Origin: Monocercomonoides exilis PA203
Taxonomy: Eukaryota; Protista; Preaxostyla
Assembly (NCBI GenBank): GCA_001643675.2
Contig: LSRY02000006.1
Span: forward strand, 248,001 to 312,000
Direction: 5' to 3'
DNA length: 64,000 nt
Position numbers and translations under genes: made by a program. Shown here one piece after another: positions 3,001-30,070 of the stretch (within the stretch, counting starts at the first letter, position 1; every line of letters starts with the position of its first letter). The notes beneath the pieces are model-generated. The model was not told the origin of the DNA. It saw only the letters and a list, made by a program, of their open reading frames with translations, and ran no database searches.

Positions 3001-5237
3001 CCGTTATTGCTTGAGGAGACATTTTCAAAATGACAGTCTTCAGCGATAATGCCGAACGAGAATGTTCCATGAGCTTCGATAACCCCTCCATTTCCCGATA
3101 TCCTTTGGATCAAAGAAAAGTTTGTGTTCACCATATTCAGAACTGAGCCAGGCTGATTCACATTGCATGCGATGAAACTGTCAGACAAGAAATTCATGCC
3201 AGCAATTCCGACTCCTGACAATTCCACATTCCCTGCGCATAAGCGCATGAAAGATGCTTGAAGCTGCAATGTGTTGTCAACCGATGATATTTCGCATTCG
3301 TCCATTGTCAACGATCCATCGCCATCCATCACCACAAAAGGCATGCTTTTCCCACTCTCTGCATTCGCTTGGAGCATTGTCACTTTCTGAACACTAAAGG
3401 CTCCGGATGAAACATGAAAGACAGACTCCAACGATGAAGAAGATTGCACAACACACTCATTCTTTGACAGTCCACAAACACTGAAATTGTTGGAAGCTAT
3501 TGATATTTGTTCTTCTTGGAACACACTTGGTCGCAGGATCAGAGTTTTGTTTGAATTGCTTGTTGTTCTCTCAAGTGAATATTTGATTGAACGGCACAAA
3601 GGTGCAAAACCACATTGTTCATAATCAATCCCCACTGAATAATCAGCTGTTATTTGGTGATTGTTTTCATAATCGCTCAGCCACGAACTCAGATCTGAAA
3701 TTTCAGTGCATTTGTAGTCTCCATCATCGCATCTTGTAATTCTTGGGGATTCACTTGAAGAGAAACAATCAGAAATGTTATTTTCCTCGATTTCCTTCCA
3801 CTGTTGATAATCCCATAAGTGAATATCATGCCCATATACGCTGTTTTCAGCTGTGTTATTATGGAAAAGGCAATATTTGATATTTATTGAAGGCATATCG
3901 GAAGTTTCTTCTTCAGAAAAAAGGATACAAGGAGCAAAGCCTTCGCTCCTGCAATTCTGCATCAAACAGTTTGATATCAATATCGATGTGCTTACGTGCC
4001 AGAAATATGTAACCGATGCGTACGAGCTTGAACTAGCATTATCAAAAAAGCAAGAAACTACATGACATGGATTGACTTTGCATGAAGCCCAATAAAAGCA
4101 AGTTTTGCTTTGAGATGAACAATTTGTAATAGAAGTTGCAAAAATTACTCCTGAATCAATATAATTTAGTTTAAATCCACCTGTTTCTCCTGGTGCTGAA
4201 CATTCGTTCACAATACATTTTTCAGAAACAAATTTTCCTGTAGATGAAAACATCGAAACAGCTCCCGTATCAGTTTTTGAAGAACATTGAATGAACAAAC
4301 AACTGTGCAAAATAATTGATGCATTTTTATTACCAAACAAAGCACCACCTGTTTCATCGCTTTGAACATTGAACGTGTCATCGTTAAACTCATTTTCTCC
4401 TTCTGAAAATGGTTGTCTTTCATGATAAGTTGTGTAGCATTTCAGAAATGAGGAATTATTGCAGCGAAAAGAGATCTTTGCTGGCGAAAGAATGCCTCCA
4501 GAATACGGACTCTCACAACCAATCATCATTGTGCTTTCCACCAAGACTCTTTCAGAACGTCCAATTCCTTTGTTGTATTTTCTCATTGTTTTTTGCAAAG
4601 TGATGTTTTGGAACAAAGCATCAGACACAGACACTGATGAAAGACAACTCGAAGAAAGAAATGGACCACTGCCAAAAACTTCAAATGAAGAAAACATCGA
4701 AGAAGACAAGCACAACTCGCTGCCATGAGGAAGAACATCCTTTGAATGATGAGCTATCAAAGACGATAATTGGCGATCCTGAACCACAAAACCGAAAGAG
4801 ATGTTTCTGAGAGATACTCGGCCTGCGAATGAATGAAGCAGATTTTTCGATTGCGGGATCGCATTGAACGAGCAACAGCAAATGTCCAATTGTGAATTCA
4901 GTTCGAGAGATGCAAAATGCCCCTCAGAATATAAGTTATAGGAAAGGGCAGATGAACAAATGGTGGAGTTTGTGAGAATCAAAAATGAGAGTTCATTTTT
5001 GATTTCCTCTTGTTTTCTCTTCTCGTGATTCGTTTGGCCAAAAGACAAGCCATGATCACCTGAATTCATAATTGTTGTTGCATGGTGGCAACAACCAATT
5101 CCCTCAAGGCTGTTTCCAAAAGCCACGAAAGAAAAGATAAGACACGATGAAATGAGCAGATTCATCGAATGCTGATTATGCACAACCAGATTATATGTCG
5201 GATCCGAATAGACATAATGATTTTTCTCCCGATTCAT
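1..5237 (-). pseudogene. Giant beta-helix-repeat receptor pseudokinase, copy A (5' part only; runs off the window start; two frameshifts)
   Basis: ORF 1275..5381 is colinear with ORF 16170..24107. Likely start is ATG 5237 (MNREK) or 5165 (MNLLISSCLIFSFV, signal-peptide-like). Relative to copy B there is one extra base in the homopolymer at 1336-1340 and another at 841-844, so the frame passes to ORF 650..1285 and then on past base 1. These could be real lesions or homopolymer sequencing errors. Confidence 0.8.
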
Positions 5238-6960
5238 TTTGATTTTCTTTGAAAGCGAAAAATCGAAAAGCAAGCAAAAACAAAAAACAATATCGAGCCA
5301 ATATTCATTGCAACATGAAGAATTTTTCAGAAAACAATAAAAGATGATTTTTTCACAATGGGAGCAATGATAATTTATCATTTGCTAAAATTTAAAAATA
5401 AAGAGAATTATTTTTCAAAGAAGAATCCAATTTCTTTTCTGTACAAGCCAAAAACAACTGATTTTTTCCCCGTTGCATGTTCCGAATGAATACCAATTGT
5501 TCATGAAAGGAACAATTTCCCCACACAGAATAATCTATTTTCTGCCTGGGAATATCAACACAAAAACTCCAATAATGACATTGTTCAAATTCAGAAATCG
5601 GTTTCCAACAGATCAATCCATTCAATAATTTATTTATTCGAAAAAGTTAAAGAAGAAGAAGTCAAAGAAGAAGAACAACCTTCAGAACTGAAAGGCTGAA
5701 CGATAGAATGAAAGAATATCAGAATAGTTGGGCAGATTCAAAAGCTGAATTTGTGATGAAAAATTTCTGAACAGAGTCAGTTTGCATTTTGAATGTTTTG
5801 ATAAAATCCACAAATTTCAAATGAATTCAAACAATGAGATGTTGAAAAATCTTTTTCTTTCTTTTTGTTTTGAATTGACCATTTGTTGTGATGAAAGTGT
5901 TGAAAACAAACCAAACAATGAAATTGCCAAAGAACAACAGCCAAAGCGATTGTCTGTGATTTCCAAAGTGAAGACCACTTCCTTTTGTGGATTGAGCATC
6001 TTTGTTGTTGCTGTCTGTTGCCTTTGGAGACTCCTGCATTCAGAAGCATTGAGAATGGAAATAATGCTCATCATTCTTTTTTTGAAACAAGCAAACCGAA
6101 ATGCCTCCAAAATTTTTTGAGTGCAAACAAAAGGAAACAAAGCAAGAATCAAAGTTGGAAATAGAAAATTACAGGACTTTGAACATTTCATCAAGGCATC
6201 CAAAGAAAGGGCGTTGTATTTATCTTTTTCTCAGAAAAATGCCTGTGTGTCTGAAATGCAATCAGCTTTGTTGCAGCAGCTCCAACACAAAGAATCCCAA
6301 TGGCTTTTTGGCGAGTTGATGTTGAATTATTGGAACAAGATGGTTGATGATCTTTTTTTGAAGAAAACACAACATCGTCTTCTGTGCGTCTCACATGCAG
6401 AAATGCATATTCCATCAATCCTTCTTTGTGAGGGTTTCTTTCGTCAGACAACAAAATGAATGCGTTGCTGTGATCTGTTTGGATTTGGAGAACAACGCTT
6501 TTCCCAAACATATTATTGTCTCATCAACCACTTGGGGATGATGAGAAGTGAGTTGTTTCAGAATAAGATGACATTTCACAAAGTGAAATCGGCAAAACCA
6601 AATGGATCGTATTATTTCATCATTGCATTGACTGTGCTGACATGATGGTGGTGCTTGATGTTTTCATGGGACTTTTGCTCGTTGCAATGGTTTGCTGAAT
6701 GCTCCAAATGTGAATAACAAACAACTGAGTGCATTTATTATTTGATTGATTTGTTTTGTTTTTTCAAAAGAATTTCAATTTGCATGCCTGGTTGCATTAT
6801 CATGTGTTATTTTGAATCGATTGTATTGGTGAGATTTTTTTTTCAGAATGACTTTTTTGGAAGAAACTGAGAAATTCATGGGTGTGCACTTCTTGAAAAG
6901 GAACAAATTTGGAGTCAATACTGAATATGGAAATGGATTTCGAACAACAGATTGTTGGAT
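1..6960. repeat. Inverted repeat 1, left arm (pairs with 14520..21470; continues beyond the window start)
   Basis: Bases 1-60 match the reverse complement of 21411-21470. Similarity continues through the coding region and ~1.7 kb of upstream DNA, ending near GATTTCGAACAACAGATTGTT (~6957 / ~14525). Confidence 0.95.
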
Positions 6961-7491
6961 AAAGAGTGAAAGGAAGATTATTATAGAAGTTAAAAATTGA
7001 AAACTATAATTTTTTCCCAAACATTTAAAAAAAGAAAAATATGTAAATTGTGATTAATGAAAAATACGAAAAAAAAAAACATTTTGATTATAAGTTTTCC
7101 ACTGGCTTGTGTGAAGATGTTGCTATGGCAAAAAAGAAAATGGGTTAGAAAAAAAGATCAAAATTTTACAAAAACTCTATTTTTGCCAATGAATGTGATC
7201 CGTTTTGGCTGGTAAGATCTTTTTATCATTGACGCATCGCTCATGATAATATTCGATATTGATTAAAGAATAATAATCATTCTTTTGCGAATGAAAAACT
7301 TTTAAAATAGAAAATATATGTTTTTTATCCAAAAACAAAAATATCAAATTTGAATTTTTTTGTTATAAAGAATTGATTATTGAAAATGTGATTCATAAAA
7401 AATAGTTCAATTTGCTTCTTCCTCAAGCCTCTATTTCAAATAAATATCCAATAAAAAAAGAAAGGATGGAAGAAAACAAAAAACTTTTCAT

Positions 7492-13821: not shown

Positions 13822-14519
13822 TTTTATTCTGTTTCTGAACCATAATAAAAAATTTCCAAGTTTGTTTTAAAAAAACTTATATGAATATTTGAAAAATTGA
13901 TTTTGAACAAAATTTTCCATTTAAATGAGGAAAATATCATTTTTATTAATTTCAAAAGTTAGAAAAAGACGGGTTTTTTAGACATTCAATGGAAAAATAA
14001 TATTACCTTTTTTATTCAAAAGACAAATTTTTGAAATGATAATTAATGAATTTGATTTCAACTTTTCAAAATATGTGTTCCGTTTTTTAAAGCTTAATTA
14101 TTTTTATTCTTTTTGAAAAATCTGAAATGAATTCAACAAAATTCAATTGATGAATCCACAAATCCAATTAACATACCTTGCAAAATAAAAATGAATTGTG
14201 AAAATCATAAATTAAGTGAAACAAAATCAAAAGAAAAGAAAGCAAACAACAAAAGATAGTGCTTTGATAAAAACACTCCTCTTCTTTTTCAGCAATGAAA
14301 CTAGATTTTGTTAAATTCTATAACACATATATAATTATAGCGCTTCAGCAACCGAAATCCCAATCTGATTCCACTTCTTTTCCATCCTCAGGACTATCTT
14401 GAATGAACATTGTTTTGTTGGCTTCAAGGTGCTTTCGTTCTTTTTACCTCTTTGTTGCTGAATAGATTCTATGTAGTGTTTTTCATTTTATCTTTCATTA
14501 CATCGTCTATTCACTTAAC

Positions 14520-17500
14520 ATCAAACAATCTGTTGTTCGAAATCCATTTCCATATTCAGTATTGACTCCAAATTTGTTCCTTTTCAAGAAGTGCACACCC
14601 ATGAATTTCTCAGTTTCTTCCAAAAAAGTCATTCTGAAAAAAAAAAATCTCACCAACACAATCGATTCAAAATAACACATGATAATGCAACCAGGCATGC
14701 AAATTGAAATTCTTTTGGAAAAACAAAACAAAACAATCAAATAATAAACGCACTCAGTTGTTTGTTATTCACATTTGGAGCATTCAGCAAACAACTGCAA
14801 CGAGCAAAAGTCCCATGAAAACATCAAGCACCACCATCGTGTCAACACAGTCAATCCAATGATGAAATAATATGAGCAATTTGGTTTTGCCGATATCACT
14901 TTGTGAAATGTTATCTTATTCAGAGACAACTCACTTCTCATCATTTCCAAGTGATTGGCAATACGATTATATGTTTGGGAAAAGCGTTGTTCTCCAAATC
15001 CAAACAGATCACAACAACGCATTCATTTTGTTGTCTGACGAAAGAAACCCTCACAAAGAAGGATTGATGGAATCTGCATTTCTGCATGTGAGACGCACAG
15101 ATGACGATGTTGTGTTTTCTTCAAAAAAGAGATCATCAACCATCTTGTTCCAATAATTCAGCATCAGCCCTCCCCAAAGCCATTGGGATTCTTTGTGTTG
15201 GAGCTGCTGCAACAAAGCTGATTGAATTTCAGACACACAGGCATTTTTCTGAGAAAAAGATAAATAACAACGCCCTTTCTTTGGATGCCTTGATGAAATG
15301 TTCAAAGTCCTGTAATTTTCTCTTTCCAACTTCGATTCTCGCATTCTTTCCTTTTGTTTGCACACAAAATATCTTGGAGGCAAATCGGTTTGCTTGTTTC
15401 AAAAAAAGAACAATGAGCATTATTTCCATTCTCAATGCTTCTGAATGCAGGAGTCTCCAAAGGCAACAGACAGCAAAGACAAAGATGCTCAATCCGCAAA
15501 AGGAAGTGGTCTTCACTTTGAAAATTGCAGACAATCGCTTTGGCTGTTGTTCTTTGGCAATTTCATTGTTTGGTTTGTTTTCAACACTTTCATCACAAGA
15601 AATGGTCAATTCAAAACAAAAAGAAAGAAAAATCTTTTTCTTCATTTCATTGTTTGAATTCATTTCAAATTTGTGGATTTCATCAAAACATTCAAAATGC
15701 AAACTGACTCTGGTCAGAAATAATTCATCACAAATTCAGCTTTTGAATCTGTCCAACTATTCTGATATTCTTTCATTCTATTGTTCAGCCTTTCAGTTCT
15801 GAAGGTTGTTCTTTTTATTCGACTTCTTCTTCGAAGAAATAATATGTTGAATGAATTGATCTGTTGGAAACCGATTTCTGAATTTGAACAATGTCATTAT
15901 TGGAGTTTTTGCGTTGATATTCCAAATCAAAAAAGGATTGTTCGGTGTGGGGAAATTGTTCCTTTCATGAACAATTGGTACTCATTTGCAGCATTTAACC
16001 AAAATAAAATCTGAAGTTTTTGGCTTGTGCAGAAAAGAAATTGGATTCTTCTTTGAAAAATAATTCTCTTTATTTTTAAATTTTAGCAAATGATAAATTA
16101 TCATTGCTCCCATTGTGAAAAAATCATCTTTTATTGTTTTCTGAAAAATTCTTCATGTTGCAATGAATATTGGCTCGATATTGTTTTTTGTTTTTGCTTG
16201 CTTTTCGATTTTTCGCTTTCAAAGGGAAAATCAAAATGAATCGGGAGAAAAATCATTATGTCTATTCGGATCCGACATATAATCTGGTTGTGCATAATCA
16301 GCATTCGATGAATCTGCTCATTTCATCGTGTCTTATCTTTTCTTTCGTGGCTTCTGGAAACAGCCTTGAGGGAATTGGTTGTTGCCACCATGCAACAACA
16401 ATTATGAATTCAGGTGATCATGGCCTGTCTTTTGGCCAAACGAATCACGAGAAGAGAAAACAAGAGGAAATCAAAAATGAACTCTCATTTTTGATTCTCA
16501 CAAACTCCACCATTTGTTTATCTGCCCTTTCCTATAACTTATATTCTGAGGGGCATTTTGCGTCTCTCGAACTGAATTCACAATTGGACATTTGCTGTTG
16601 CTCGTTCAACGTGATCCCACAATCGAAAAATCTGCTTCATTCATTCGCAGGCCGAGTATCTCTCAGAAACATCTCTTTCAGTTTTGTGGTTCAGGATCGC
16701 CAATTATCGTCTTTGATAGCTCATCATTCAAAGGATGTTCTTCCTCATGGCAGCGAGTTGTGCTTGTCTTCTTCGATGTTTTCTTCATTTGAAGTTTTTG
16801 GCAGTGGTCCATTTCTTTCTTCGAGTTGTCTGTCATCAGTGTCTGTGTCTGATGCTTTGTTCCAAAACATCACTTTGCAAAACACAATGAGAAAATACAA
16901 CAAAGGAATTGGACGTTCTGAAAGAGTCTTGGTGGAAAGCACAATGATGATTGGTTGTGAAAGTCCGTATTCTGGAGGCATTCTTTCTCCAGCAAAGATC
17001 TCTTTTCGCTGCAATAATTCCTCATTTCTGAAATGCTACACAACTTATCATGAAAGACAACCATTTTCAGAAGGAGAAAATGAGTTTAACGATGACACGT
17101 TCAATGTTCAAAGCGATGAAACAGGTGGTGCTTTTTATGTGAACAATACAGCATCTTTATTGTTACATCGATGCACTTTTTTGAGATGTTCTTCAAAATG
17201 GCATGGAGGTGTTGTTTATATGCTCAAATCAACTGGAAGATTTGTATCAGAAGAATGTGTTGTTAATGAATGCTCAGCACCAGGAGAAACAGGTGGATAT
17301 AGAACTGATAATATCTTTTCTTTCCAAATGAATTCAACATCATTCACCAATTGCTCATCAGAAGGCAAAACTTGTTTTTACATTCCGAATGCAGATAAAA
17401 ATAAGTTCATAATAAATTCATGCATTTTTTACAATGCGACTTCAATCCAGTGCTCTTCGGTCACTCATTTTTTTGAAATAAGAACATTAACATTGATATC

Positions 17501-20500
17501 GAACTGTTTGATGCAGAATTGCAGGAGCGAAGGCTATGCTCCTTGCATATTTTTTGCTCAACAAAATGAACTGTATCAACCATCAATAAATTTAAAGTTT
17601 TGCCTTTTCCATAACAACACGGCTGAAAATGACGCATATGGGCATGATATTCATCTTGCGAATTGTCAAAAGTGGAAGGAAATCGAGGAAAATAACATTT
17701 CTGATTGTTTCTCCTCAAGTGAATCCCCAAGAATTACAAGATGCGATGATGGAGACTACAAATGCACTGAAATTTCAGATCTGAGTTCGTGGCTGAGCGA
17801 TTATGAAAACATTCACCAAATAACAGCTGATTATTCAGTGGGGATTGATCATGAACAATGTGGTTTTGCACCTTTGTGCCGTTCAATCAAATATTCACTT
17901 GAGAGAACAACAAGCAATTCAAACAAAACTCTGATCCTGCGACCAAGTGTGTTCCAAGAAGAACAAATATCAATAGCTTCCAACAATTTCAGTGTTTGTG
18001 GACTGTCAAAGAATGAGTGTGTTGTGCAATCTTCTTCATCGTTGGAGTCTGTCTTTCATGTTTCATCCGGAGCCTTTGGCGTTCAGAAAGTGACAATGCT
18101 CCAAGCGAATGCAGAGAGTGGGAAAAGCATGCCATTTGTGGTGATGGCTGGCGATGGATCGTTGACAATGGACGAATGCGAAATATCATCGGTTGACAAC
18201 ACTTTGCAGCTTCAAGCATCTTTCATGCGCTTATGCGCAGGGAATGTGGAATTGTCAGGAGTCGGAATTGCTGGAATGAATTTCTTGTCTGACAGTTTCA
18301 TCGCATGCAATGTGAATCAGCCTGGCTCAGTTCTGAATATGGTGAACACAAACTTTTCTTTGATCCAAAGGATATCGGGAAATGGAGGGGTTATCGAAGC
18401 TCATGGAACATTCTCGTTCGGCATTATCGCTGAAGACTGTCATTTTGAAAATGTCTCCTCAAGCGATAACGGAGGTGGTCTGTGTGTTTTCCTCCAAGAA
18501 AGCAGCAAATGCACATTAAACGGAACATGCATCATTGATGGATGCAAGGCAGAGAATAATGGAGGGAATGGAGGGAGAGGAGGGAGAGGAGGAGGGATGT
18601 TTGTGCTGATGGAGAGTGGGGGATGTGGATTGACAATTGGGCAGAATGTTGAGTTTTCGAAAGTGAGGGAGAATGTGGCAGAATATGGGAAGGATGTGTT
18701 TGTTGATTGTGGGAGTGGAGTGTTTCTTGAGTCAAAAGTGAATAACAGCTCATTTGCATTGTTTGACACAAGCGCCATTCCATCAGATGTGCTGAAGCTG
18801 AGTGGGAGTGAGAATGGGGATGAAAATGGAGTGATTCCACTGTTTGTGTATTTGTGCACAATGGGAACAAAGGTGATTGTTGATGGGAGTGGAGGAAATG
18901 GGATGGATCACAACCATTGTGGGTTTGAGGCATTCAGGTGTTTGACAGTTGATTATTGCGCGAACTCAAGATTGAGTGAAAGTTCAAAAGAAATAGAGGT
19001 TGTCTCACCTTCGTCAATAAGGGATGAAATTAAAATTTCTTTATTTGGTGTGATAATTTCAGGCAGAATAGCATCATCATCAGAGGGAGAGAGGAAGCAG
19101 GTGAGTGTGAGTGATGGAGGATCAGCCACACAAGATTGGCTTGTGGGATGTTCGAGTTCACTGACAATGAGCAGACTTTCATTTGTTGTGAAAGGTCAGT
19201 TGAATTCAAGGAGAAGTGCATTCGTTCACTCAACATCAACAATCAACATGACGAACTGTTCAGTCTCGTTTGAGGGTGGGGCATTGACTGATGGAAAGAT
19301 CGGATATAATGTGATAAACATTGAGGGTGGAGAACTGATTGTTGATGGATTTGTGATGGAAGGGGGAGTGATAATGAATGGGAAATCTCCAATTGCAATT
19401 TCAAATGGAGCTGAATTGGAGATTTTGAACAGCAGGGTGATTGGAGTGGAGGTGAATGTGGCAGGTGGAAGTGGAGGAGGGGGATGTTTGAATGTTGGGA
19501 TGAAGGAAGGTGGATGTGTGAATATTGAAGAAAGCAATTTGTCCTCGATCTGCTCAGGTGGAAGTGAGATGAAAGGAGGAGGGTTGATGATATCAGTTGG
19601 AAGTGGAGGAAGTTTGGAAATGAAAAATGTGAATTTGTCTGAGTGCAAAGTGCCAACAGAGGATAGAGAGGATGGAGGAAGAGGAATTGGAGGAGGGATG
19701 TTTGTGAAGCTGCCAGATGAGATGGGATCATTTGTGCTCGAAGGAATGATATTTGAGGGATGTGATGCCTGGAAAGGGAAGAACATGTTTGTTTCAGGAT
19801 GGGTTCTGAGAGAGTGTGTGAACAAGGAGCGCTTCAAATGGGAGATGAATCCAGAAGAGTTAGGATCGTTAGATGAGCTGTGTGGATGGGAGAGGAAGAC
19901 AACAAGAGAGGATGGATATGTGATTCCATTGGTTGTGTATTTGTGGAGTAATTGGAGTGGAAATGGGTTTGTTTCGAAAGATGGAGGAGGAGACTTCAGT
20001 GGATGTGGATATTTGGAAGCACCATGTTCATCGATTGACCACTTGGTATCACTGAGATATTCGACACTTGATGAAGGGGAATCCCACATCAGCATTGTGG
20101 GATCAGGGCTGTTGAAACATTCCATATCATTTTCATCTTCTTCCTCATCGCCTCCAGCTTCACCTGATTCAGAGTCACAAAAAGTGGTGATTGAAGGAAC
20201 AATGAAAGGAACAGCAGTGATGACAAGCAATGATGAAGATGAGAATGATTTGATTGGTGGATCATTAATATCATCTGGTGTGAGTTTGACACTGACAAAT
20301 TTGTCATTCTCAAATCCAAATCCAAACAGCCATCATGAGATACTGATCGAATCATCAGGAGCAAACATCTGTTTGTCAGTCGTGGATTGCTCATTTGCCT
20401 CATTGAATGGAATGGCAGATGCAGGATTTTGTGTGATGAAAGTGAATGGAGGCAGAGTTATTGTTCAAGGATGTTCGTTGGATGCAGCTGGAGAGTTGAG

Positions 20501-21470
20501 AGGGTTCATCGCTTTCAGTGCAACAGCAACAAAGGAGGTGATTGTGGAGGATGTGAATATCTCGAATGTTGGGGTGAAAGAGAGAAGTCTGATATCGATG
20601 TTTGAGGATGAGCAGACGAATGGGATGAAAACCAAAAGAGGGATAAACAGGGGAGAAAACAGGCATTCAAACAACGAAAAAGTGGTGATAAAAGTGAATG
20701 GTTCTTCGTTCACAAACATCACAAATGGAGAAAACAGAGCAGGGGTGTTGAGTGTGGATTCATTTGCGAGGGCAATGGAGTGTGTGTTGGAGGGGTGTTC
20801 GGTTTCGAGCTGCAGGAGTGAAATGAGCGAGGAAGGAGGAGGGATGAAAGTGTGTCTGAAGAGAGGAGAATCAGAAGTGAGAGTTGTTGGATGTTCGCTG
20901 GGGATGTGTTCGTGCTCGGGGGTGAAGGGGAGAGGAGGAGGGGTGATGGTTGATGCACTTGACCCGAATGAGGGTGGAGCCAGTGCATTTGGGCCTGTTG
21001 GGATAAGGATGGAGAATGTGAGGTTTTGGGGGAACGAGGCATTTGTGGGGAAGGATGTGTTCATCAGATGCGAGTCGATTGCCGAACAGATCAATGAGAC
21101 ATTGTTTGTGCTGGATCTCAGCCAGGATGCCCTGAAATCCTCCAACTCCATCTGTGGGTCTGACAAGGAGAGGGGTGATGTTGATCTGATCCCTCTGATC
21201 ACATTCTATTATGGCCAGCAGGTGTTTGTCTCTGCAAGTGGAAGAGATGACAGACAATGTGGGGCACAGAACAATCCTTGCCTGAGCATTGGCAGTGCAG
21301 TGAAGCACATTCAAAGAGGTGTGTGGAATTCCATTTGGATTGATGGGGAAGGTGTGATTGGGGGAGTGTGTGTGATTGGGGATATGAATGTGAAGAGTCT
21401 GAAGAAGACTCGATCCACAATCCATCTTGAAGGAAACATGGAGGTTGTGGGGGATGAAGGGAGTGTGGTT
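14520..21470. repeat. Inverted repeat 1, right arm (pairs with 1..6960)
   Basis: Reverse-complement match to 1..6960, covering the upstream non-coding region and the first ~1750 codons of receptor B. Confidence 0.95.
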
Positions 21471-24107
21471 GTGTCTGTGAATGAGAGTGCTGTGGAGAAA
21501 TGTGAATTCTTGTTTGGGTTGAGTTTTGAATCAGAGCATTCAAGCATTGTGAAAGTGAAGAATGGGACATTGGGGGTGAGTGAGTGTTGGTGGAAGAGTG
21601 TTGGAATGATGACACTTTTGAACAGCACAATTGTGGAAGTGGAGAGTGGAGAGCTGGAGATGGAGAAATGTGTTGTCAGCTGTGTTTCCACTTCACGAGA
21701 GATATTGTCAGTCTGTGAAGGGAGCAAGGCTGTGATATATCAGCTGAGGATGAGCGATATCGAGAGCGAGGATGGAGGGATTGTTGATGCGAAGAAAGCA
21801 AGGGTGGAGGCGAAGGAGATGTCGATGAGCAACATCACCAGACAGAACAGAGGGAGCATTGTGAAGATCGTTGATTGTGCAGAAAGAGTGGATTTGATGA
21901 ATTGCTCGATGAGGATGTGTTTGGGGAAAGAGGAGAGAGGATGGATGGTGAGTGTGTGCAAGTGTGAGTGTGTGAATGTTGATTGTTGTGAGTTTGATGG
22001 AGAAGAGGAAGAGAATGAAAAGAGATCAAGAAATGAGCAGGATGAAGGAGAAAGAAGAGAGGAGATATGCAAGTGGAATGGCTCAATGGTTGAATTTGAG
22101 AAGAGTGAAGTGGAGATGAAAGTGACTTCGATGAGAAACAGCAAGAAAGGGGGATTGTCAGTGAGTGGAGGAAGCGTTGCGATTGAGAAAGGAGAGTTTG
22201 CGAACAACAACCCATCCATTGGAAAATATCCCTCAGCTCGGAGAAACATATTGTGTTCGGATTCTGCTCAGCTGAATATCATAAGTCTGAAGGGAGGAGA
22301 TGGGGTTTTACCAAATACATCACTTTGGATTCTGAATGATGGATGCAGTTTGATGGGGATTGTTGAGGAGCGAGCATCGCCATTGTTCATCCCCACACTC
22401 CGATCGGTGGAGACAGAGGAGAAGGAAGGGGTGCTGGATGTTGTGTTCAGGGGCACACTTCTTCTGCCATGCAACCTGTCGTTTCGGGTTGTTTCGTCGG
22501 TGGGGGATGTGGAGCAGATGGAGACTCACGAGATAAGTGAGTCTGGATTTGTGAGTGAAGAGGAAGTTCGTGGCACAACTGTGTTGGAGATGGTCAGAGG
22601 AGCAGAGGCGAGTGCGGAAGTGAGGGTGTGCATCTTGTTTGGAGATGGCCATTCTCCCTCGGCAACTGAGTCATTCATCCTGAAGAACAGGAGCGAGACT
22701 GATCCAAAGGGAGATGAAAGGATTGTTGAAGGAGGAAAAGAAGGGAAATCGATATGGCCAATCGTTGTGATTGTATGTGTTGTATTTGTTGCGCTTCTGC
22801 TTGTTGTTGTTATTGTTCTGGCTGTACGCTGGAGAAAGGTTAAGAATGAAGCAGAAGATCTGAGAGAGATTGTGAATGATAACATCAGAAAGGATCCGAA
22901 GGCATTTGAGATGGTGACAATGGAGATGTCGCCTGAGGAGCAGTGGAGAAGAGCTGAGAGAGACGCAGAGAAGAGGAATGATGAGAGGATAAAGAAGAGG
23001 GTGTATGGGAAGCAGATGCAGCATTCTGAGTCTTCAGAGCATCTTCTATCCGAGAGTGGATCGACTGAATACATTTTGGGCAGAGATTCAGACAAGATCC
23101 CTCAATGGGCACTGGAGAAGGTTGATGAGAAAGAGGAAGAAGAAGAGGAAGAAGAAGAGGAAACAAGGAAGAGAACTCCTTCACCATCCATCTCATCCAC
23201 TTCAACAGCTGATTCTGATTCAACTTTTGTTCGAGTGGAGAGTCTGTGTCCAACCACCTCATCCATGTCGAATCTGGTGGATGCAATGGCATGTTCGTCT
23301 CCTCATGAGAAGCTGATTGTGGACTTGAGGGATTCGCTGTTCATGCTGCTGCACGGAAGGAATAAGACAAAAGAGATGGCGATTGGCACTCTGCAGGAGA
23401 GGGAGCAGACAGCTGCTCAGATCCTGTTCTGGGTGGCAAATGGAGCTCTTCATTCATTTGATGAGATGGAAAATCCACTTCAGTCACTGACAAATCTGAG
23501 TCCTCACATTGTATTGTTCTCGGAGCATATGGTGATCTGCATTGTGATGCATTCGGACTTCTCATCTTCAGACTCAGATTCATCATCGATCTCATCAACA
23601 ACAGTTGTGACATCTGCAAGTGATGATGATGATGATGACTCCCTTCCCTCGTCTGCCTTTGAGGATGAGGATGACTTCAAAAAAGAGTGCCTGAGGTGGA
23701 AGGCGCCTGAGCTGCTGATCAACAAGAAGATGGGTGCAACCAAGGAGTCGGTGGCATTCTCGATCGGGATGATGGTGTGGGAGTGTCTGACGCTCCAGGT
23801 TCCGTTTGGTGATTATGAGGCAGAGGTGGCAGGGCAGAAGATCGTGAATGGGGAGAGGCCAGCCCTGGGCAGCGCGGAGCGATCGTCGTTCTGCTCTGTG
23901 GTTGAAAACTGCCTCAACAGCCTTTCGCAGAAGCGCCCATCCCTCGCAACCCTCAAAAGAGAGCTCTTCCTGCATTTTCCGCTGGGAGCGATGGTCCTCA
24001 CAGCCTCAGATGCCATCGATCGCACAACGGACAGCCAGCAGTCTGGCAGAGGTGCATCGAGTGAACTTGCTTGCAGCGAAAGCGAAATACTTGAAAATCG
24101 CAACTAG
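16236..24107 (+). CDS. Giant single-pass receptor, copy B (intact, ~2620 aa): signal peptide, beta-helix/pectin-lyase-like repeat ectodomain, TM helix, TKL-type pseudokinase
   Basis: Uninterrupted ORF. First ATG is 16236 (alternative 16308, MNLLISSCLIFSFVASG). Four GxDxxxCG...C modules with GNGG/GGG, GKDVF and IPLxVY motifs. TM WPIVVIVCVVFVALLLVVVIVLAV-RWRK at ~22753-22835. Kinase C-lobe motifs RWKAPE, FSIGMMVWECLT..VPF and GERP, with no GxGxxG, VAIK, HRD or DFG. Confidence 0.9.
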   Translation: MNREKNHYVYSDPTYNLVVHNQHSMNLLISSCLIFSFVASGNSLEGIGCCHHATTIMNSGDHGLSFGQTNHEKRKQEEIKNELSFLILTNSTICLSALSYNLYSEGHFASLELNSQLDICCCSFNVIPQSKNLLHSFAGRVSLRNISFSFVVQDRQLSSLIAHHSKDVLPHGSELCLSSSMFSSFEVFGSGPFLSSSCLSSVSVSDALFQNITLQNTMRKYNKGIGRSERVLVESTMMIGCESPYSGGILSPAKISFRCNNSSFLKCYTTYHERQPFSEGENEFNDDTFNVQSDETGGAFYVNNTASLLLHRCTFLRCSSKWHGGVVYMLKSTGRFVSEECVVNECSAPGETGGYRTDNIFSFQMNSTSFTNCSSEGKTCFYIPNADKNKFIINSCIFYNATSIQCSSVTHFFEIRTLTLISNCLMQNCRSEGYAPCIFFAQQNELYQPSINLKFCLFHNNTAENDAYGHDIHLANCQKWKEIEENNISDCFSSSESPRITRCDDGDYKCTEISDLSSWLSDYENIHQITADYSVGIDHEQCGFAPLCRSIKYSLERTTSNSNKTLILRPSVFQEEQISIASNNFSVCGLSKNECVVQSSSSLESVFHVSSGAFGVQKVTMLQANAESGKSMPFVVMAGDGSLTMDECEISSVDNTLQLQASFMRLCAGNVELSGVGIAGMNFLSDSFIACNVNQPGSVLNMVNTNFSLIQRISGNGGVIEAHGTFSFGIIAEDCHFENVSSSDNGGGLCVFLQESSKCTLNGTCIIDGCKAENNGGNGGRGGRGGGMFVLMESGGCGLTIGQNVEFSKVRENVAEYGKDVFVDCGSGVFLESKVNNSSFALFDTSAIPSDVLKLSGSENGDENGVIPLFVYLCTMGTKVIVDGSGGNGMDHNHCGFEAFRCLTVDYCANSRLSESSKEIEVVSPSSIRDEIKISLFGVIISGRIASSSEGERKQVSVSDGGSATQDWLVGCSSSLTMSRLSFVVKGQLNSRRSAFVHSTSTINMTNCSVSFEGGALTDGKIGYNVINIEGGELIVDGFVMEGGVIMNGKSPIAISNGAELEILNSRVIGVEVNVAGGSGGGGCLNVGMKEGGCVNIEESNLSSICSGGSEMKGGGLMISVGSGGSLEMKNVNLSECKVPTEDREDGGRGIGGGMFVKLPDEMGSFVLEGMIFEGCDAWKGKNMFVSGWVLRECVNKERFKWEMNPEELGSLDELCGWERKTTREDGYVIPLVVYLWSNWSGNGFVSKDGGGDFSGCGYLEAPCSSIDHLVSLRYSTLDEGESHISIVGSGLLKHSISFSSSSSSPPASPDSESQKVVIEGTMKGTAVMTSNDEDENDLIGGSLISSGVSLTLTNLSFSNPNPNSHHEILIESSGANICLSVVDCSFASLNGMADAGFCVMKVNGGRVIVQGCSLDAAGELRGFIAFSATATKEVIVEDVNISNVGVKERSLISMFEDEQTNGMKTKRGINRGENRHSNNEKVVIKVNGSSFTNITNGENRAGVLSVDSFARAMECVLEGCSVSSCRSEMSEEGGGMKVCLKRGESEVRVVGCSLGMCSCSGVKGRGGGVMVDALDPNEGGASAFGPVGIRMENVRFWGNEAFVGKDVFIRCESIAEQINETLFVLDLSQDALKSSNSICGSDKERGDVDLIPLITFYYGQQVFVSASGRDDRQCGAQNNPCLSIGSAVKHIQRGVWNSIWIDGEGVIGGVCVIGDMNVKSLKKTRSTIHLEGNMEVVGDEGSVVVSVNESAVEKCEFLFGLSFESEHSSIVKVKNGTLGVSECWWKSVGMMTLLNSTIVEVESGELEMEKCVVSCVSTSREILSVCEGSKAVIYQLRMSDIESEDGGIVDAKKARVEAKEMSMSNITRQNRGSIVKIVDCAERVDLMNCSMRMCLGKEERGWMVSVCKCECVNVDCCEFDGEEEENEKRSRNEQDEGERREEICKWNGSMVEFEKSEVEMKVTSMRNSKKGGLSVSGGSVAIEKGEFANNNPSIGKYPSARRNILCSDSAQLNIISLKGGDGVLPNTSLWILNDGCSLMGIVEERASPLFIPTLRSVETEEKEGVLDVVFRGTLLLPCNLSFRVVSSVGDVEQMETHEISESGFVSEEEVRGTTVLEMVRGAEASAEVRVCILFGDGHSPSATESFILKNRSETDPKGDERIVEGGKEGKSIWPIVVIVCVVFVALLLVVVIVLAVRWRKVKNEAEDLREIVNDNIRKDPKAFEMVTMEMSPEEQWRRAERDAEKRNDERIKKRVYGKQMQHSESSEHLLSESGSTEYILGRDSDKIPQWALEKVDEKEEEEEEEEEETRKRTPSPSISSTSTADSDSTFVRVESLCPTTSSMSNLVDAMACSSPHEKLIVDLRDSLFMLLHGRNKTKEMAIGTLQEREQTAAQILFWVANGALHSFDEMENPLQSLTNLSPHIVLFSEHMVICIVMHSDFSSSDSDSSSISSTTVVTSASDDDDDDSLPSSAFEDEDDFKKECLRWKAPELLINKKMGATKESVAFSIGMMVWECLTLQVPFGDYEAEVAGQKIVNGERPALGSAERSSFCSVVENCLNSLSQKRPSLATLKRELFLHFPLGAMVLTASDAIDRTTDSQQSGRGASSELACSESEILENRN

Positions 24108-26705
24108 CAGCAGGGCACGATCAAAGTGGGACTGACTCTTCAACTGCCCATTTTTCTCGTATTTCTGTCTGCTTGATGCACATCGCGTCGCAGCATTCCT
24201 TATATTTTTTCTTTTCTTTTTTTGATGTTTTGTGCCAAATGGCTTTTGTTTTTGACTTTCCTATTTTTTTTTTCCCTGTTCCATTTGAATGTCTTCACAT
24301 CACCATCCATCCTTTTCCTGTTCATAGGCTTGGAGCAACCCTTCATTTCCCAGTGCTGCTTCTTTCCTGCCATTCCATTCCTCATGTCTTTTTGCACTTC
24401 CACAGAAAAATCCATTAAAATAAATAATCTCGACAATCTTGAATCAAAGACGGTATCGAAGCATTTTGTGCAAGAGTGAGAGAGAATCAGCCTTCAAAAA
24501 GAGTTGAAGCAAACGAACAAAAGCGATTCCAGATAAATCTTGAATGGGCCATGTGCCGTTTCTGCCCATTTCTGAATTCTTCCATTGAATTGTAACACAT
24601 GCACATATACAGAGAGAAAGAAATGCATTTCTTTTCTCTCCAAAACAAAGATCGGGCAAGACTCGCATTGCCGCTCACACATCAAGCGATAGAATAAAAC
24701 GCTGCTGAAAAACACAAAATCCTTCTGGCTTCCAAAACCTCCAGCTTTGCTTTTCCCCTTCGTGTCATCGCAATTCTGCGTCCTGCCACCAATAAATCAA
24801 TAAAAATGACTCGCCTCAAGTCCGTTTTGCTGAGCGCTTCACGAAAACGCTTTTGATCCAATTTTCAGGAATGAAAATCGAAATGCCTCCTCAAATCAAA
24901 AATAACAAAGATGTTTGGCAAATGTTTTTTTTCCCTCTATTTCTGCTTCGCTGTTGGCTTTGCTTCTTCAGATAGAACGAAGCACTTTCAAGAGAAAATA
25001 AAAGGTTTTCTGATGTGTATTGAAATGAATGATGCTCCATTTCATGGATTCCATCCATTTGAGCCTTTTGAGCCAAAACCCTCAGATGACCAATTGATTG
25101 GAAATGCACCAAAAAATAAAAAAATCGAATATCCCTTCGACCTTGCTGCCTCGTGTCGGCTCGAACATCCCCAGCTTCGCAAATGCCCCTTCCCATGAGC
25201 AACTCCCTTGCTTTGCTGCTTTTCACGCCTCTCCAAATCCGAAGGTCAAAAATAGATATACGACGGAATCCTCCCGTTCGTGTCCCAGACCCAAAGCATG
25301 TTCCTCCTGAGCCGTTAGCAAACAATTCGAGCAGTGCATTCAACAAGTCGGCCAAAAAAATAAAAAAAATGATGATGTTTCAACTCGAATCGTGGCTTCT
25401 TCATCGCTTGTTTGGGTCGCAATTGCGGAGCACAAAATCAATTATAACATCTTTATTCTTGCCGTCCCTTTTTTTGCTCCAAAAATAACACCACAGCCGC
25501 TGGGCGCCTCCAACAGTTTGCTTTTTCATCCATTCCGTGAAACCCAGCGTTATTTGGCAATAAAGCGTCCACCACTCATTTCCTCTCCGAAACAAATAGC
25601 ATGTGGCAGTTGCACGAAAAAACGATCATGTCCGCGCAGCAACACTTGCATCGTCTTTTTTCTTCAAATGGTTTTTCGTTTTTTCTCAAGCAATCCAAAA
25701 AAAGATGAGTTCAACAACTGCAAGTGTGGCACTGCTGCCCGCATGCAGCAAATGCAGAATGGCTCCCATCCTCGACATTGGTTCACTTTCCGTTTCCTTC
25801 AGCAGGCCCAATAAAAGACATCTTCAGTTATTGTCAATTTATTCATCGTCGCATGAATGTTTCTCTGTTAATAATTCCATTCCTCTGAAAACAAAATCGC
25901 ATGCGCCATCGTTGCATCGAGCGCATTTTGCATGTCTCGGCTGTGCTCGGTGAAATCTCAATTTCATTGCAAAGATTAACAGCAGCATAAATCAACCCCA
26001 GCGCAGCGTCGCTTCAGCTTTTCGACCCATTTCCAGAAGTGATGACAACCATTGGGCAAATATAATGAAAGACAGGCCTTAGCCTTTGCAGTTGCAAAAA
26101 TACTTTTTCGATTGATCAATCTCATTAACTATTTTATTTCGGTCAAAAAAATAAAAAATATTTTCTGAGGGGACATATTTTTCTTTTTTGGAATCTAACT
26201 AATAGATTGAAGTGGTTCGGTCAATAGCGTGAAGCGTTTCCGTTGAAAACTGTTTCAAAAATTAAAAAAAAAATGAATTTTATTCAATTTTCATTGAAAA
26301 GTCATTATTTGGTGATTATTGTTGAAATGATATTTTTGTATTTCCATTTTGGAGAATTGATTGCTTCCTTCAGCTGATTATATTGATATTCCAATGTGTG
26401 GCAAATTGTTCTGTCCAAAGTTATTAATTACAGAGCAAACCAACGAATGGTGCAAGCAATAATGGAAGTTTGCCATTGTTGTTTTCCCCATCTGGGTCAA
26501 AACTTCTGGCGCAACATTCCAATTTTTATTCAAAATTTTTGTTAAAAATATTTCGATATTCTATCAGAAAGAATCGCCCAATTGTTTCGATTTCGATGTT
26601 GAACTGAAAATGATTTATTTTATTCAGTTTTTTGGAACTGGCTCGTTATGTCTCACAACAACATGGAACAAATTGTAATAAATATTCGCAATAGAGCGAA
26701 TATCC

Positions 26706-26782
26706 GAACGCAAGGAGCAGGTTTGCTTCTCAATAATGAGTATTGTTCATGATTTATGTGCGGTTTAAGATCTAACTTCGCC
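26706..26782. repeat. DIRS left inverted terminal repeat
   Basis: 26733-26782 matches the reverse complement of 31374-31423 at 45/50 positions; looser similarity extends out to 26706 / 31451. Confidence 0.9.
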
Positions 26783-27617
26783 AATACTCAAATTCAAAGT
26801 TGATCCAAATTGTCCGCAATGAAAATGAAGCAACAACCTGTTACAATAGAACACAGAGACGGCGATGGAAGTGAATTAGATCAAAATTTATCACTGGTCA
26901 AAGTGGAATATTTTAGTGAAAAATTTACCAGGATTTAAGCATGAAATTTATCATCCAGAATGGAAGAAAGTGCACAGCCGAAGATATCGAACGGCAAGCT
27001 GCACATTGTGAAGAGATGTTATCAAGAACAGAAGCTATAAAATTCTGTGAGATAATTATTGGAATTAGAGCCACATTGTGCAGCGAGACAATTGTCCAAA
27101 CAGAAACTATAAAAAATCGAGAGATGTTTAAACAAAATGAAGATATGATATTCTATAGGCTTTAAAAAAGAATACAACTACACATTATTTTGTTTATTTA
27201 TTAGGAATAAGAACAACGTATTGAAGCAAGAAATCGATATATTAAGAAAGTGCTTGATATCGCAAGAATTTTAAGAGATAGATCCACAAATTGCAGAGAG
27301 ATTATTTTGGAGAAAGAATTTCCTATCTAATGAAATTTCGAAACAATATAATAAATATATACAATATAGAAGAGATATATTCATATAATGCTGTGGAATT
27401 CAAATTTAAACAAAACCAACGAGAAACAACAGAATATTGATAGAATTTGTAAGGAAGAAGATCCACGCATAACCGCGAGATGTGAATTATTTCAGAAGTG
27501 ATTATATAGCTATAATAATTTGATTACAATTTGAATATATATAATTAAAATGAGACAAAGCATTGTATCGAAATAATTACAATGAACATAATCGTGTTTA
27601 ATCGTTAGATTAAGATA

Positions 27618-27723
27618 GACACAGAGAGAAGTGAGAGCCGCGCTTTGCCGCGAGACAGAGAGAGAAGAGAGATCCGCGCTTTGCCGCGAGACAGAGAGAG
27701 AAGAGAGAGCCGCGCTTTGCCGC
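27618..27723. repeat. 36-bp tandem repeat, ~3 copies, inside the DIRS element
   Basis: Unit GAGACAGAGAGAGAAGAGAGA(T/G)CCGCGCTTTGCCGC at 27652-27687 and 27688-27723, with a slightly shorter copy from 27618. Degenerate relatives occur near 28035-28170. Confidence 0.9.
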
Positions 27724-28689
27724 GGGATCATGATTTGATTAATGGATTGAAGAGCAGCATATTAATGCGTGAGATGGATAAATAGAGAATCTGCAAAAAA
27801 TTAAGAGAGGATTATTTAGGAAAAGAGCTGCGCAGTTACGCGAGATACCGATTACTACAGTGACGAAATATTTATATTTATATAATGCAAGGATATTTGT
27901 AACAATCGATACATATATTACAGCAATGTTTTAATAAAAGGATAATTTCATTACAGTTACAAGATAATTATTTGAAATGAAGCTGTGCATATTCGGGAGA
28001 GAGTTACAAAGAATCAAACCGAGTTCGAGCTCGAGATCATGAGAAAAGAGAGAGAATAGAAAGACATGCTTTTCCGCGAGACTAAGAGACGAGTGAGTAA
28101 CCGCGTTCAATACCGAGACTATGAGAAGAGATAGAGCAGAGAACAGCGTTTCGCAGCGAGAAGACTATAGAGATAGAATACTCAGTAAATCGATTGACTT
28201 TTGCTAAGGAAATATATACAAGCTGTGTCACAACACAATATTAAACTGAAAGAGAGAAATATCATCAATTAATAATTGGAAATGTTACGATTAATTACAA
28301 GAGAAATCAGAACAAAAGAAAAATCGTGAAACATATCGGGACTGAGGGAGAAGAGAGAGCACTGAATTGAAGCGAGATAATCGAAGAGTGACAAATTGTT
28401 TTTAATCGAAAGAATTTGAATGAAGAGAAAGCTGAGTTTACTACGAGAAAAGGATGGAGAAAGAGATTGAGAGAAGTTGCAAATCGATAATACGATTAAA
28501 AATAGTGCACTTTTGCGAAATAGGCAGACATTGTAACCGCGAAATTTCGTGAGAAAATTGAAGAAGTGAAATCCGCGAAGAATCGCGAGGAGAAGATAGA
28601 GCATGTGACAGCGGAAGACAGCGAGAGGCGGATTCTTAAAGAAGCCGCGTTGCACGGCGGATGAAATTAGAAGAAAATTCCGCATATCT

Positions 28690-29125
28690 CAGCTGAAATG
28701 CTGATAGACGCACTCAGCCGGACTTAGAAGAAACTGGACAATGCACTTAGAGTGAAGAAAGTCGCAGAGATATTTCAAACATTCGCACCGAGAAGACTTG
28801 ATTCAATTTCAGACCCGATTACTCCGGTGCACTGTGGAACTATTTAAAAACTTTCCTCTCTGTGAAGGAAGAGAGAGAAAGAAATGCAAGAAGATGAGAT
28901 AGTGCAAGTCCATCTGTCCCTGAGAAACATCGGACGGGTGCTGAAAGAGAAGATGAATTAAGCTCAGAGGGGACTAACGATTCTGATTCTGCCAGCCTGG
29001 CGGGGGCAGACCTGGACCCCGTACTGCAGCCTAGGCATTTGATAAAGACCCTGGGGACCTTTCAGGAGTGCATGATTCCGGGAGCGAAGATGAGAAGGGA
29101 AGACTGGAAATTACCCCCAGGAGAG
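28690..29125 (+). pseudogene. DIRS pol C-terminal remnant (end of RNase H plus methyltransferase-like domain)
   Basis: IDALSR at ~28704-28721; VHLSLRNIGRVLKEKMN*AQRGLTILILPAWRGQTWTP at ~28908-29021; MIPGAKMRREDWKLPPG at 29072-29122. Contains stops and frameshifts. Confidence 0.75.
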
Positions 29126-29339
29126 GTTATAAGCGTTATACTGGAGAAGAGAATATTCAGGGGAGAGACCTCTTCTTAACATGGGGAGAACACGTTGGAG
29201 CAAAAGAGATAGCAGCAGCAAAACTTAGAAATCAAAAGAGCGAAACAGACACATGGAGAGCGCTGAGAAAAATTTAAACAATTTTTGGATAGAGAAAGAA
29301 AGGATGAAACAGACACCTTATAGAGAAAGATGCCAAATG

Positions 29340-30070
29340 GATTGTGGCCGAATTTATTGAAACTCTATCCAATACAAACGCTTTGAGTGGAGAGATAAAC
29401 GGAGCTGAACGTGAAGCATTGGAGCCTTTGAACCTTTTCAAAGAAATGAAGACGAATGGGAAAGATATTGATTCATCACCTAAAACCCACGTTAGAGATA
29501 AGCCGAGAAGGGGCAAACAATATAAATCAATGGGGGATTTTACAATTATAACAAAAGGGGGATGACACCACATTTAACTCAATAGACACGCAAGCATCAC
29601 AGAGGAGAGCCCCTATCCTCACAGAAATTTTGTAACGTTTGAGCCAGCTGAGCTGGAGAGATTGAGAAGGGAGTGTTCTATATTGAAAGAGAATGCAGCA
29701 TTAATAGAAGTGCAGATAAAGATAACATTAAGGAAGACAATAAAAATCGATATTAACAAACATTCAAACTCACTTATCGATACAGAAGAAACGCTCTAAC
29801 GTGAGTTGGATTTTTCCAGGATTATTTTAAAAAGATGAACACGTGCAGTTGATATTAAAGAAGGTGAGCCTGCAAATATGCAGAGAATAAAAGAAGAGTT
29901 AGAAGCTATTCAAAGAGAGTATGAAATACAAAATCATTTGACCGCGCTCTCGATTAGACAGAAAGTTATAATACACATATCAAGAAGAAAATGTTGAGAT
30001 TGGAAAGCGAGAAAGATACACGCAAGAGGGGAGCAAGGATCAAGAGTGGACAGAAAATTTAAAACATTTA
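29340..30070 (+). pseudogene. DIRS tyrosine recombinase remnant
   Basis: PRRGKQYKSMGD (PxxxKYxxxWD-like), VTFEPAELERL (RxxEL-like box, ~29632) and HLTALSIRQKVI (HSxR-like box, ~29935) occur in the expected order after pol. Heavily mutated. Confidence 0.6.

Follow-up and report, generated by a model that had tools for sequence, protein, structure and literature searches.

Results

Two giant paralogous receptor genes in inverted arrangement

The window (the whole stretch of 64,000 nucleotides of DNA of the gut protist Monocercomonoides exilis that was analyzed) contains two paralogous genes, A on the minus strand and B on the plus strand. Gene B (16311 to 24107) is a single-exon open reading frame (ORF) encoding a receptor of about 2,600 residues; the frame is open from 16170, and the initiator methionine at 16311 was inferred from where paralogues start and from a stretch resembling a signal peptide. 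Gene A (1 to 5162) extends past the left end of the window, and its public protein model (P0001) comprises 2,621 residues. Position p of B corresponds to position 21473-p of A; a direct-repeat alignment at an offset of 13332 was ruled out, as the two copies are inverted. The right arm of this inverted duplication spans 14480 to 21470 and the left arm spans 1 to 7003, continuing beyond the window. A second inverted duplication (22147 to 26684) covers the 3′ end of B, which matches that of gene C (37900 to 33359) at 97% identity. Gene A carries an apparent stop at 1275, caused by a single surplus assembly base at 1336 that is missing from the contigs of sequencing runs X1, X2, and X6. Gene A is thus most likely intact, and its interpretation as a truncated donor gene was discarded.

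A and B encode giant single-pass surface receptors whose ectodomains are built of beta-helices and whose kinase remnant is dead. Hydropathy predicts a single transmembrane helix in B (22755 to 22829, plus strand), followed by a TKL-like kinase C-lobe remnant (23673 to 23966, plus strand) with MLK, ILK, and CTR1 matches, which aligns to PF07714 at 30.4 bits over model positions 162 to 258 only. The APE motif is retained, but none of four catalytic motifs (the Gly-rich GxGxxG loop, the VAIK lysine, the HRD aspartate, and DFG) was found in residues 2331 to 2620. Judged by these motifs, the kinase region is a pseudokinase remnant. The homologues returned by our searches were from M. exilis.

A sharply bounded divergence island in the outermost module

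The two genes differ most in one block, located at 17135 to 17670 on the plus strand in B (ORF residues 322 to 501) and at 3803 to 4338 on the minus strand in A. In both it takes up the regular rungs of the outermost beta-helix module, and in B it comprises six full rungs of that module plus the capping strand. As proposed in the preliminary description, no gap is needed to align the two blocks, which show 78 residue differences (173 nucleotides over 180 codons), while the adjoining flanks differ at five residues each (12 nucleotides over the 299 codons before the block and 13 over the 309 after it). The conserved scaffold and the variable motifs listed there are all present. A three-segment change-point fit placed the edges exactly at 17135 and 17670 (log-likelihood gain of 172), with a conserved GGA codon run preceding the left edge. 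The homogenized 5′ (16031 to 17134, plus strand) and 3′ (17671 to 18600, plus strand) flanks differ by 1.1% and 1.4%, respectively. The initial figure of about 98% identity outside the block therefore holds for the immediate flanks but not for the farther arms, where DNA differences range from 3 to 14% and the whole proteins outside the block are about 94% identical by summed counts. A second, weaker divergence patch (19601 to 20200, plus strand; 13.8%) covers the last part of module 3 together with its linker, and divergence outside the block is strongly heterogeneous along the arms (χ2 of 193, df of 23), as repeated conversion would predict. Equal length is likewise true of the pair but not peculiar to it, since the module has no gap column across all 13 subfamily members. 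Within the island, A and B are identical over a 25-nucleotide patch (17274 to 17298, plus strand), where the 11 other members differ from B at 4 to 9 positions, and over a 34-nucleotide patch (17502 to 17535, plus strand; permutation P of 0.0005 for this pair, uncorrected for 78 pairs).

Both junctions of the A block were found, with identical letters, in independent contigs, and contig depth in run X1 was about 26 over the block and about 60 over the shared flanks, i.e., roughly half over the block. The island is thus not an assembly chimera.

Fold of the module and location of the variable residues

AlphaFold models of the B and A heads, together with structure matches, bear out the beta-solenoid suggested earlier: the block (pLDDT of about 90) was modeled as a parallel beta-helix of right-handed, pectin-lyase-like type with PB1-T1-PB2-T2-PB3-T3 rungs. 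A G-x-D-I-x capping motif (17640 to 17657, plus strand) ends module 1 and recurs at ORF residues 840, 1203, and 1627, and the GGA and F..N columns are invariant. The best structure match of the head, obtained with a single-domain model, had a Z score of 19.5 and an rmsd of 2.9 over 223 residues; Foldseek returned clear matches with this model but weak scores only with a 511-residue model. A Pfam search of the B head gave no match, and PF02415 matched weakly in 6 of 28 members. The nearest Atlas clusters are parabasalian.

The groove of a beta-helix is formed by PB1 with the T1 and T3 loops (PMC9410043). The variable residues are surface and not core residues and, in the models, seem to lean toward this PB1/T1/T3 groove side, although not exclusively. 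With the groove and back halves assigned by hand from DSSP, without coordinates, sister pairs differed at a rate of 0.337 in the groove half and 0.209 in the back half (amino acid significance in six of nine pairs), and a residue-class test of the groove against other surface gave P values of 0.2 to 0.4. PB3 also has highly variable sites, so the proposed variable face stands as regards surface location, and probably a groove-side lean, but not as a single face. The suggested enrichment in W, Y, H, and F at variable positions was not recovered (0.16 versus 0.13).

The same module diverges in most sister pairs

In comparisons spanning about 1.5 kb on either side of the module, the divergence peak fell within the outermost module for all but one of 11 sister pairs, drawn from five subfamilies that share 25 to 33% protein identity, with block-to-flank ratios of 3 to 12. 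One copy of the lone exception has stops. Other pairs might have diverged at random positions, a possibility raised in the preliminary description; they did not, although these pairs come from one genome and are not fully independent. Recurrence in 10 of 11 pairs points to the module as a probable binding site. Five of six sister pairs are inverted neighbors by their coordinates. Regions 16401 to 16670 and 18381 to 18650 are as variable between clades as the block, yet they are homogenized in sister pairs, indicating that variability alone is insufficient to produce an island. In the pair L034/L040, upstream DNA is unrelated and the flanks differ by 1 to 2%, and the patches of difference hold 19 replacements on the groove side versus 4 on the back side.

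The edges of the block varied by pair in change-point fits (17135 to 17670, 17200 to 17416, 17168 to 17594, 17184 to 17726, and 17265 to 17396), and searches for boundary repeats or recombination signals at these edges yielded short chance matches only. The very sharp A/B edges and the GGA codon run before the left one would suit programmed cassette switching or antigenic variation between fixed boundaries, as in VSG, vlsE, or pilE systems, but pair-specific edges that have no boundary repeats do not. No silent donor archive or head-only fragment was found for the A/B subfamily, although very short fragments could escape the search, and contigs from four runs held no recombinant joint within the block. 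Moreover, pieces of A, B, and L005 co-occurred in one culture RNA library, as population-level contigs for which DNA carry-over is possible. We consider such switching very improbable.

Silent sites share in the divergence

In the block, divergence at silent sites matches that at replacement sites. Mean dS was 1.15 in the block and 0.44 to 0.49 outside it, while dN/dS was 0.22 in the block and 0.22 to 0.28 outside. With dN/dS equal, the mean block dS is thus above even the deepest dS of the flanks (0.76). Between A and B, 37 of 101 silent sites differ in the block compared with 11 of 441 in the flanks, and the silent excess is significant (P < 1e-6) in all six subfamily pairs. In three parts of the block, the data gave no class of sites whose dN/dS exceeds 1 (M2a versus M1a, P of 0.66, 1, and 0.12), and M8 versus M8a likewise gave no signal of positive selection (P of 0.19, 1, and 0.14); these codon models, in our own implementation, have low power at 47 to 84 codons per part and are weakened by saturation and recombination. 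A dN/dS well below 1, as obtained here, had been named beforehand as one half of what would refute the preliminary interpretation. The island stands nonetheless, because a block protected from conversion gathers silent differences too. Scans of dN/dS overlook such sites, whose signal is the depth of the genealogy and not the ratio.

Targeted hypermutation by a diversity-generating retroelement or a deaminase could account for dense substitutions without indels. However, among the 173 A/B block differences, 74 do not involve A, 63 do not involve T, and 105 do not involve C, so the changes are not adenine specific; they are biased toward third positions, the pair dN/dS is 0.34, and no template repeat was found. 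From the substitution spectrum, this mechanism seems largely refuted and hardly credible.

Gene conversion depends on sequence identity. A neutral, self-sustaining island, in which excess divergence blocks conversion and no selection for different binding takes part, is compatible with a dN/dS that is not raised. We regard it as improbable, since it leaves unexplained why the same module is affected in five divergent subfamilies, why groove-half patches appear in the youngest pairs, and why equally variable regions elsewhere are homogenized.

Segment transfers and the search for near-identical donors

Trees of the block and of the flanks, whose comparison had been proposed, are incongruent. 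In L004, a stretch of the L003 type (about 17080 to 17420) sits between L008-type flanks, L010, L011, and L012 share identical runs of 218 and 158 nucleotides within the block, and B has 11 otherwise private sites in common with L003 and L004. From these alignments, at least one segment transfer between contigs evidently happened. At the sensitivity of the search, the assembly held no near-identical donor for A, B, L006, or the tract of L010. In the three youngest pairs, neither member had a donor within flank-level divergence (nearest, 11.5%), no third copy or donor was found for the L034/L040 patches, and the nearest other member to the L008 tract differed by 20%. The orphan donor fragments that the preliminary description suggested collecting were not recovered for this subfamily: all 13 module matches in the genome lie within long open frames, although very short fragments could escape.

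These transfers are real and would fit a history in which ectopic conversion overwrote the heads of young duplicates with sequence of diverged donors (other paralogues, head-only fragments, or other haplotypes) and diversifying selection fixed the new heads. In five of the six pairs, the 5′ and 3′ flanks have equal ages. A single long duplication with later import would predict this as well, and it counts against the homogenization reading that we favor below. On the other hand, no donors were found for the blocks listed above, all 13 members sit in long open frames, and in L004 the L003-type tract (11.5%) predates the L004/L008 flanks (about 3%). Donors could be lost or present in other strains. 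Overall, we judge import unlikely, if worth serious attention. With pair-specific edges, absent boundary repeats, and no donor found, a fixed, swapped cassette as originally envisaged loses ground to the second option offered there, protection from homogenization.

Discussion

We think it fairly likely that gene conversion homogenizes the paralogues while selection retains old, different binding heads, with occasional swaps of segments. A and B would be old paralogues in a receptor-pseudokinase family, held nearly identical over most of their sequence by recurrent conversion that their inverted arrangement may aid. Conversions that overwrite the outermost beta-helix module would be eliminated by selection because, we propose, the A and B heads bind different ligands. 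A module shielded in this way would retain its old differences, silent as well as replacement ones, and parts of it may be copied now and then from a non-sister paralogue, giving mosaic heads. By this reading, the flanks were probably made alike by conversion rather than import, and selection probably acts on the module. Donor import and homogenization with retained heads differ in the direction of events and agree on the role of the module.

The 180-residue module is a probable candidate for the binding site of a very large receptor family. Its ligand, tentatively and with somewhat less than even confidence given the modeled fold, may most likely be a bacterial or host glycan. More speculatively, and in our view rather doubtful, the distal module might determine specificity across hundreds of receptor pseudokinases genome-wide, serving innate-immune-like or prey or partner recognition in a unicellular eukaryote, with bodies kept constant by palindrome conversion and heads that selection preserves as they recombine and that may turn over within cultures. 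The island marks this domain as a likely specificity determinant in natural pairs that are 98 to 99% identical around it. Receptor recognition thereby becomes directly testable with small matched constructs.

In the available portions of two genome papers (PMC6759080 and PMC8767320), the M. exilis “protein tyrosine kinases,” to which A and B belong, form the genome's largest gene family, are TKL-like, and overlap unclassified repeats; those portions give the kinase label only, with nothing on how the ectodomain folds, on the lost catalytic motifs, or on the variable module. Our literature search found no paper describing the ectodomain of the family or its variation. In the first eukaryote known to be mitochondrion-free, the largest gene family has been filed as tyrosine kinases, with no role assigned. 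As regards fold, chlamydial and trichomonad Pmp proteins, some of which increase adhesion in trichomonads, likewise build a right-handed beta-helix from GGA(I/L/V) ... FxxN rungs (PMC11166332 and PMC6701047), but the M. exilis receptors have Cys-rich rungs, one transmembrane helix, and a kinase remnant instead of a C-terminal autotransporter beta-barrel. Beta-helix glycan lyases, tailspikes, and adhesins (PL6, 7dmk; RbmB, 9ozd; Vag8, 7akv; PfbA, 3zpp) share the fold at 5 to 14% identity, with many tied matches and no catalytic residues assigned, and fold does not give function.

The mechanism of a divergence island is already known from opsins, the major histocompatibility complex (MHC), and plant receptor kinases. 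In the MHC and in plant R-gene and receptor-like kinase clusters, one extracellular domain is likewise far more divergent than the rest and segments are moved by conversion (PMC3924837 and PMC3136440); alleles of the Arabidopsis OAK cluster, for instance, differ mainly in one malectin-like domain (PMC3136440). In contrast, M. exilis is unicellular, no site-level dN/dS above 1 was detected, and the variable domain is a beta-helix on a receptor with a dead kinase remnant rather than a leucine-rich repeat, malectin domain, or peptide groove. Duplicates that undergo gene conversion are also described as showing divergence peaks in exon 5 of the red and green opsins, in Drosophila, and in yeast, with the theory reviewed (PMC3924837). 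Peaks of the opsin type similarly combine high identity outside with a sharp peak, silent sites included, at a functionally distinct region (PMC3924837), whereas in M. exilis many pairs of a very large family have their peak at the same module, and this peak takes in an entire domain of 180 residues and undergoes shuffling among non-sister genes as well.

A divergent block in the outermost module of two inverted receptor paralogues

Genes A and B, which encode putative giant surface receptors, lie in an inverted duplication of the window (1-7003 versus 21470-14480). B is a single open frame on the plus strand (16170-24107), and its inverted paralogue A occupies the left arm on the minus strand; the two align without gaps, B position p pairing with A position 21473-p. 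The block edges claimed in the preliminary description, 17135 and 17670 in B (3803-4338 in A), were recovered exactly by a change-point fit, and the claim of a gapless, equal-length block with about 78 changed residues was borne out, since 78 of its 180 codons differ in the encoded amino acid (173 nucleotide differences). The adjacent 299 codons on the 5' side carry 12 nucleotide and 5 amino acid differences, and the 309 codons on the 3' side carry 13 and 5. The identity of about 98% reported for the remainder holds immediately beside the block but not elsewhere in the arms, which differ by 3-14%; the whole proteins are about 94% identical outside the block. Judged from the A-B comparison only, module 1, the outermost beta-helix module, appears to be the main island across the full gene length. 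Both junctions of the A block are present in public-run contigs with no alternative letters, and a culture RNA library, in which DNA carry-over is possible, contains pieces of the A block, the B block, and the paralogue L005.

The apparent stop in A at 1275 stems from one extra assembly base at 1336 that is missing in three runs, and gene A is therefore probably intact. This base is a homopolymer assembly error that breaks the gene, and P0001, the public model of A, spans it by a short gap, probably a false intron.

B opens with a signal-peptide-like stretch; its ectodomain consists of repeated modules, every one ended by a G-x-D-hydrophobic cap, and the receptor further has a single predicted transmembrane helix and a C-terminal kinase C-lobe remnant, in which a motif check found the Gly loop, VAIK, HRD, and DFG all absent. 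Named homologues are M. exilis proteins. The accessible text of PMC6759080 lists the family solely as the genome's largest, tyrosine-kinase-like, and no description of the family, its fold, or its scale was found in the literature searched. In four very long unnamed proteins from ENA assemblies (P0010, P0012, P0013, and P0015), the module profile matches 14-23 beta-helix stretches, and nothing resembling the B tail was found.

Elsewhere in the window, 22147-26684 is an inverted copy of 33359-37900, pairing the B 3' end and downstream DNA with the gene C 3' end (97% identity, almost 100% across 24000-26600). The B and C ectodomains are unrelated at the DNA level; B thus has its head in common with A and its tail in common with C. 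The ORFs at 35934-46394 and 46409-48211 probably belong to a single receptor gene of larger size (about 4,100 aa) that is interrupted by either a frameshift or an intron. In the spacer of this second palindrome (26684-33359), short repeats at 30702-30763 and 31374-31457 match 26684-26782, and no open frame of at least 150 codons was found. Three long low-complexity ORFs (1097, 1001, and 2238 aa) lie on the minus strand at 49042-63908, with no Pfam match.

The divergence island recurs across the receptor family

At least 13 close members were found (search counts being lower bounds), and the module is gap-free in 13 of 13. It holds the divergence peak in L001/L002, L004/L008, L005/L006, L003/L009, L010/L012, and L011/L013, as well as in L031/L033, L034/L040, L036/L037, and L035/L041, which represent four further subfamilies with protein identity of about 25-33%. 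The block-to-flank divergence ratio ranges from 3 to 12 in peak-bearing sister pairs; the exception is L029/L039, with a ratio of 1.6 and stops in one copy. L038 and L039 (G000:C46, about 9.5-13 kb), matches separated by 227 nt, are 97% identical to L029, contain stops, and lack the island, possibly representing a negative control or a head fragment. The island is real and recurrent, and it marks what is probably the binding module in a family of giant receptors that is so far uncharacterised.

Its edges vary by pair (17135-17670, 17200-17416, 17168-17594, 17184-17726, and 17265-17396), and boundary repeats, looked for at the block edges, were not found. The module, rather than a fixed cassette, is therefore the unit of variation. 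The same two observations argue against programmed switching of heads, which we consider very improbable.

Block sequences are old mosaics

Mean pairwise dS was 1.15 in the block versus 0.49 and 0.44 in the flanks, and dN/dS was not raised in the block (0.22 versus 0.28 and 0.22). Site models detected no class with dN/dS above 1 in three block parts, these short partitions having low power. Adenine- or cytosine-directed mutation was excluded by the substitution spectrum, making hypermutation the least credible source of the differences. Given the higher dS at similar dN/dS, the lack of a class above 1, and the undirected spectrum, the block is older in genealogy than its flanks.

The suspected incongruence of block and flank trees was confirmed: flank topologies were rejected for the block and each part (AU p ≤3.4e-4), with mutual rejection among the three parts as well. 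In L004, L008-type sequence lies on either side of a stretch (about 17080-17420) that is of the L003 type, from another contig. Runs of 218 and 158 nt are identical among L010, L011, and L012, and 11 otherwise private sites are common to B, L003, and L004. Because trees conflict and stretches and sites are common to non-sister members, the heads are mosaics. L007, with an open frame of only 1,407 aa, turns A/B-like near the end of module 2 (equivalent to 18850-19300), a module-level chimera.

Variable sites lean toward the groove half of the predicted fold

The block runs from the PB1 strand following the first GGA motif to just past the capping strand and thus spans the regular rungs of the module farthest from the membrane. 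Top structural matches were glycan lyases, tailspikes, and adhesins (Z ≤19.5, with many ties). In such folds, GGA sits at the T3-to-PB1 transition (PMC11166332), and the T1 and T3 loops together with PB1 make up the substrate groove (PMC9410043). With rungs delimited manually on the DSSP string and no use of coordinates, variability was higher at the surface than in the core (p 0.0006). A comparison by residue class showed no significant excess for the groove side over other surface (p 0.2-0.4); the PB1 end and T1 were more variable (p 0.0002) in a grouping picked after the data were seen. With rungs split in halves, sister pairs differ more per site in the groove half than in the back half (0.337 versus 0.209), and L034/L040 has 19 replacements in the former versus 4 in the latter. 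The proposed variable ligand-binding face is thus retained as a lean toward the groove half but not as a single face, PB3 also having highly variable sites, and the suggested enrichment of aromatic residues at variable sites was not found. A PB1 row is conserved in the A/B subfamily (Y404, H433, W435, D493, and H495), and we infer a head with a conserved groove floor and a variable rim.

Retention of old heads is favoured over import

Gene conversion would keep duplicates alike, and conversion erasing a functional difference would be purged. Protection from homogenisation by selection, one of the two options first suggested, is the reading we favour, with moderate confidence, as retention of old heads with occasional swaps. 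Alternatively, young duplicates may have taken heads from diverged donors. Donors at roughly flank-level distance should then often survive, but among the youngest three pairs, whose flanks differ by 1-3%, the divergent tract is 11.5-29% different from that of the nearest remaining member, and genome searches using the A, B, L006, and L010 tracts returned known full genes only. Head-only fragments, sought for the A/B subfamily and for L034/L040, were not found. Donors may nevertheless be lost or sit in other strains, and the 5' and 3' flanks are equal in age in five of six pairs, which, in the one genome sampled, counts for import and against retention; overall, we regard import as unlikely.

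Conversion purged at functional differences fits this failure to find donors and several further observations. In L034/L040, upstream DNA is unrelated, coding flanks are nearly identical, and the divergent patches are short and lie on the groove half; a search for a third copy found none. Divergence along the A/B arms is very uneven, small patches within the block are identical in A and B, in five of the six sister pairs the genes are neighbours in inverted orientation, and regions matching the block in between-clade variability are homogenised between sisters. Between subfamilies, near saturation, the block is no more divergent (0.67-0.74) than the flanks (0.70-0.75). That the island is neutral seems improbable to us. 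L004/L008 and L005/L006 likewise have nearly identical coding flanks and unrelated upstream DNA (41-54% difference); since upstream DNA of these sister genes is unrelated, promoters are not homogenised.

The evolutionary mechanism favoured for the island is already known: conversion with preserved difference has been described for opsins and other duplicates, whose divergence pattern resembles the A/B island (PMC3924837).
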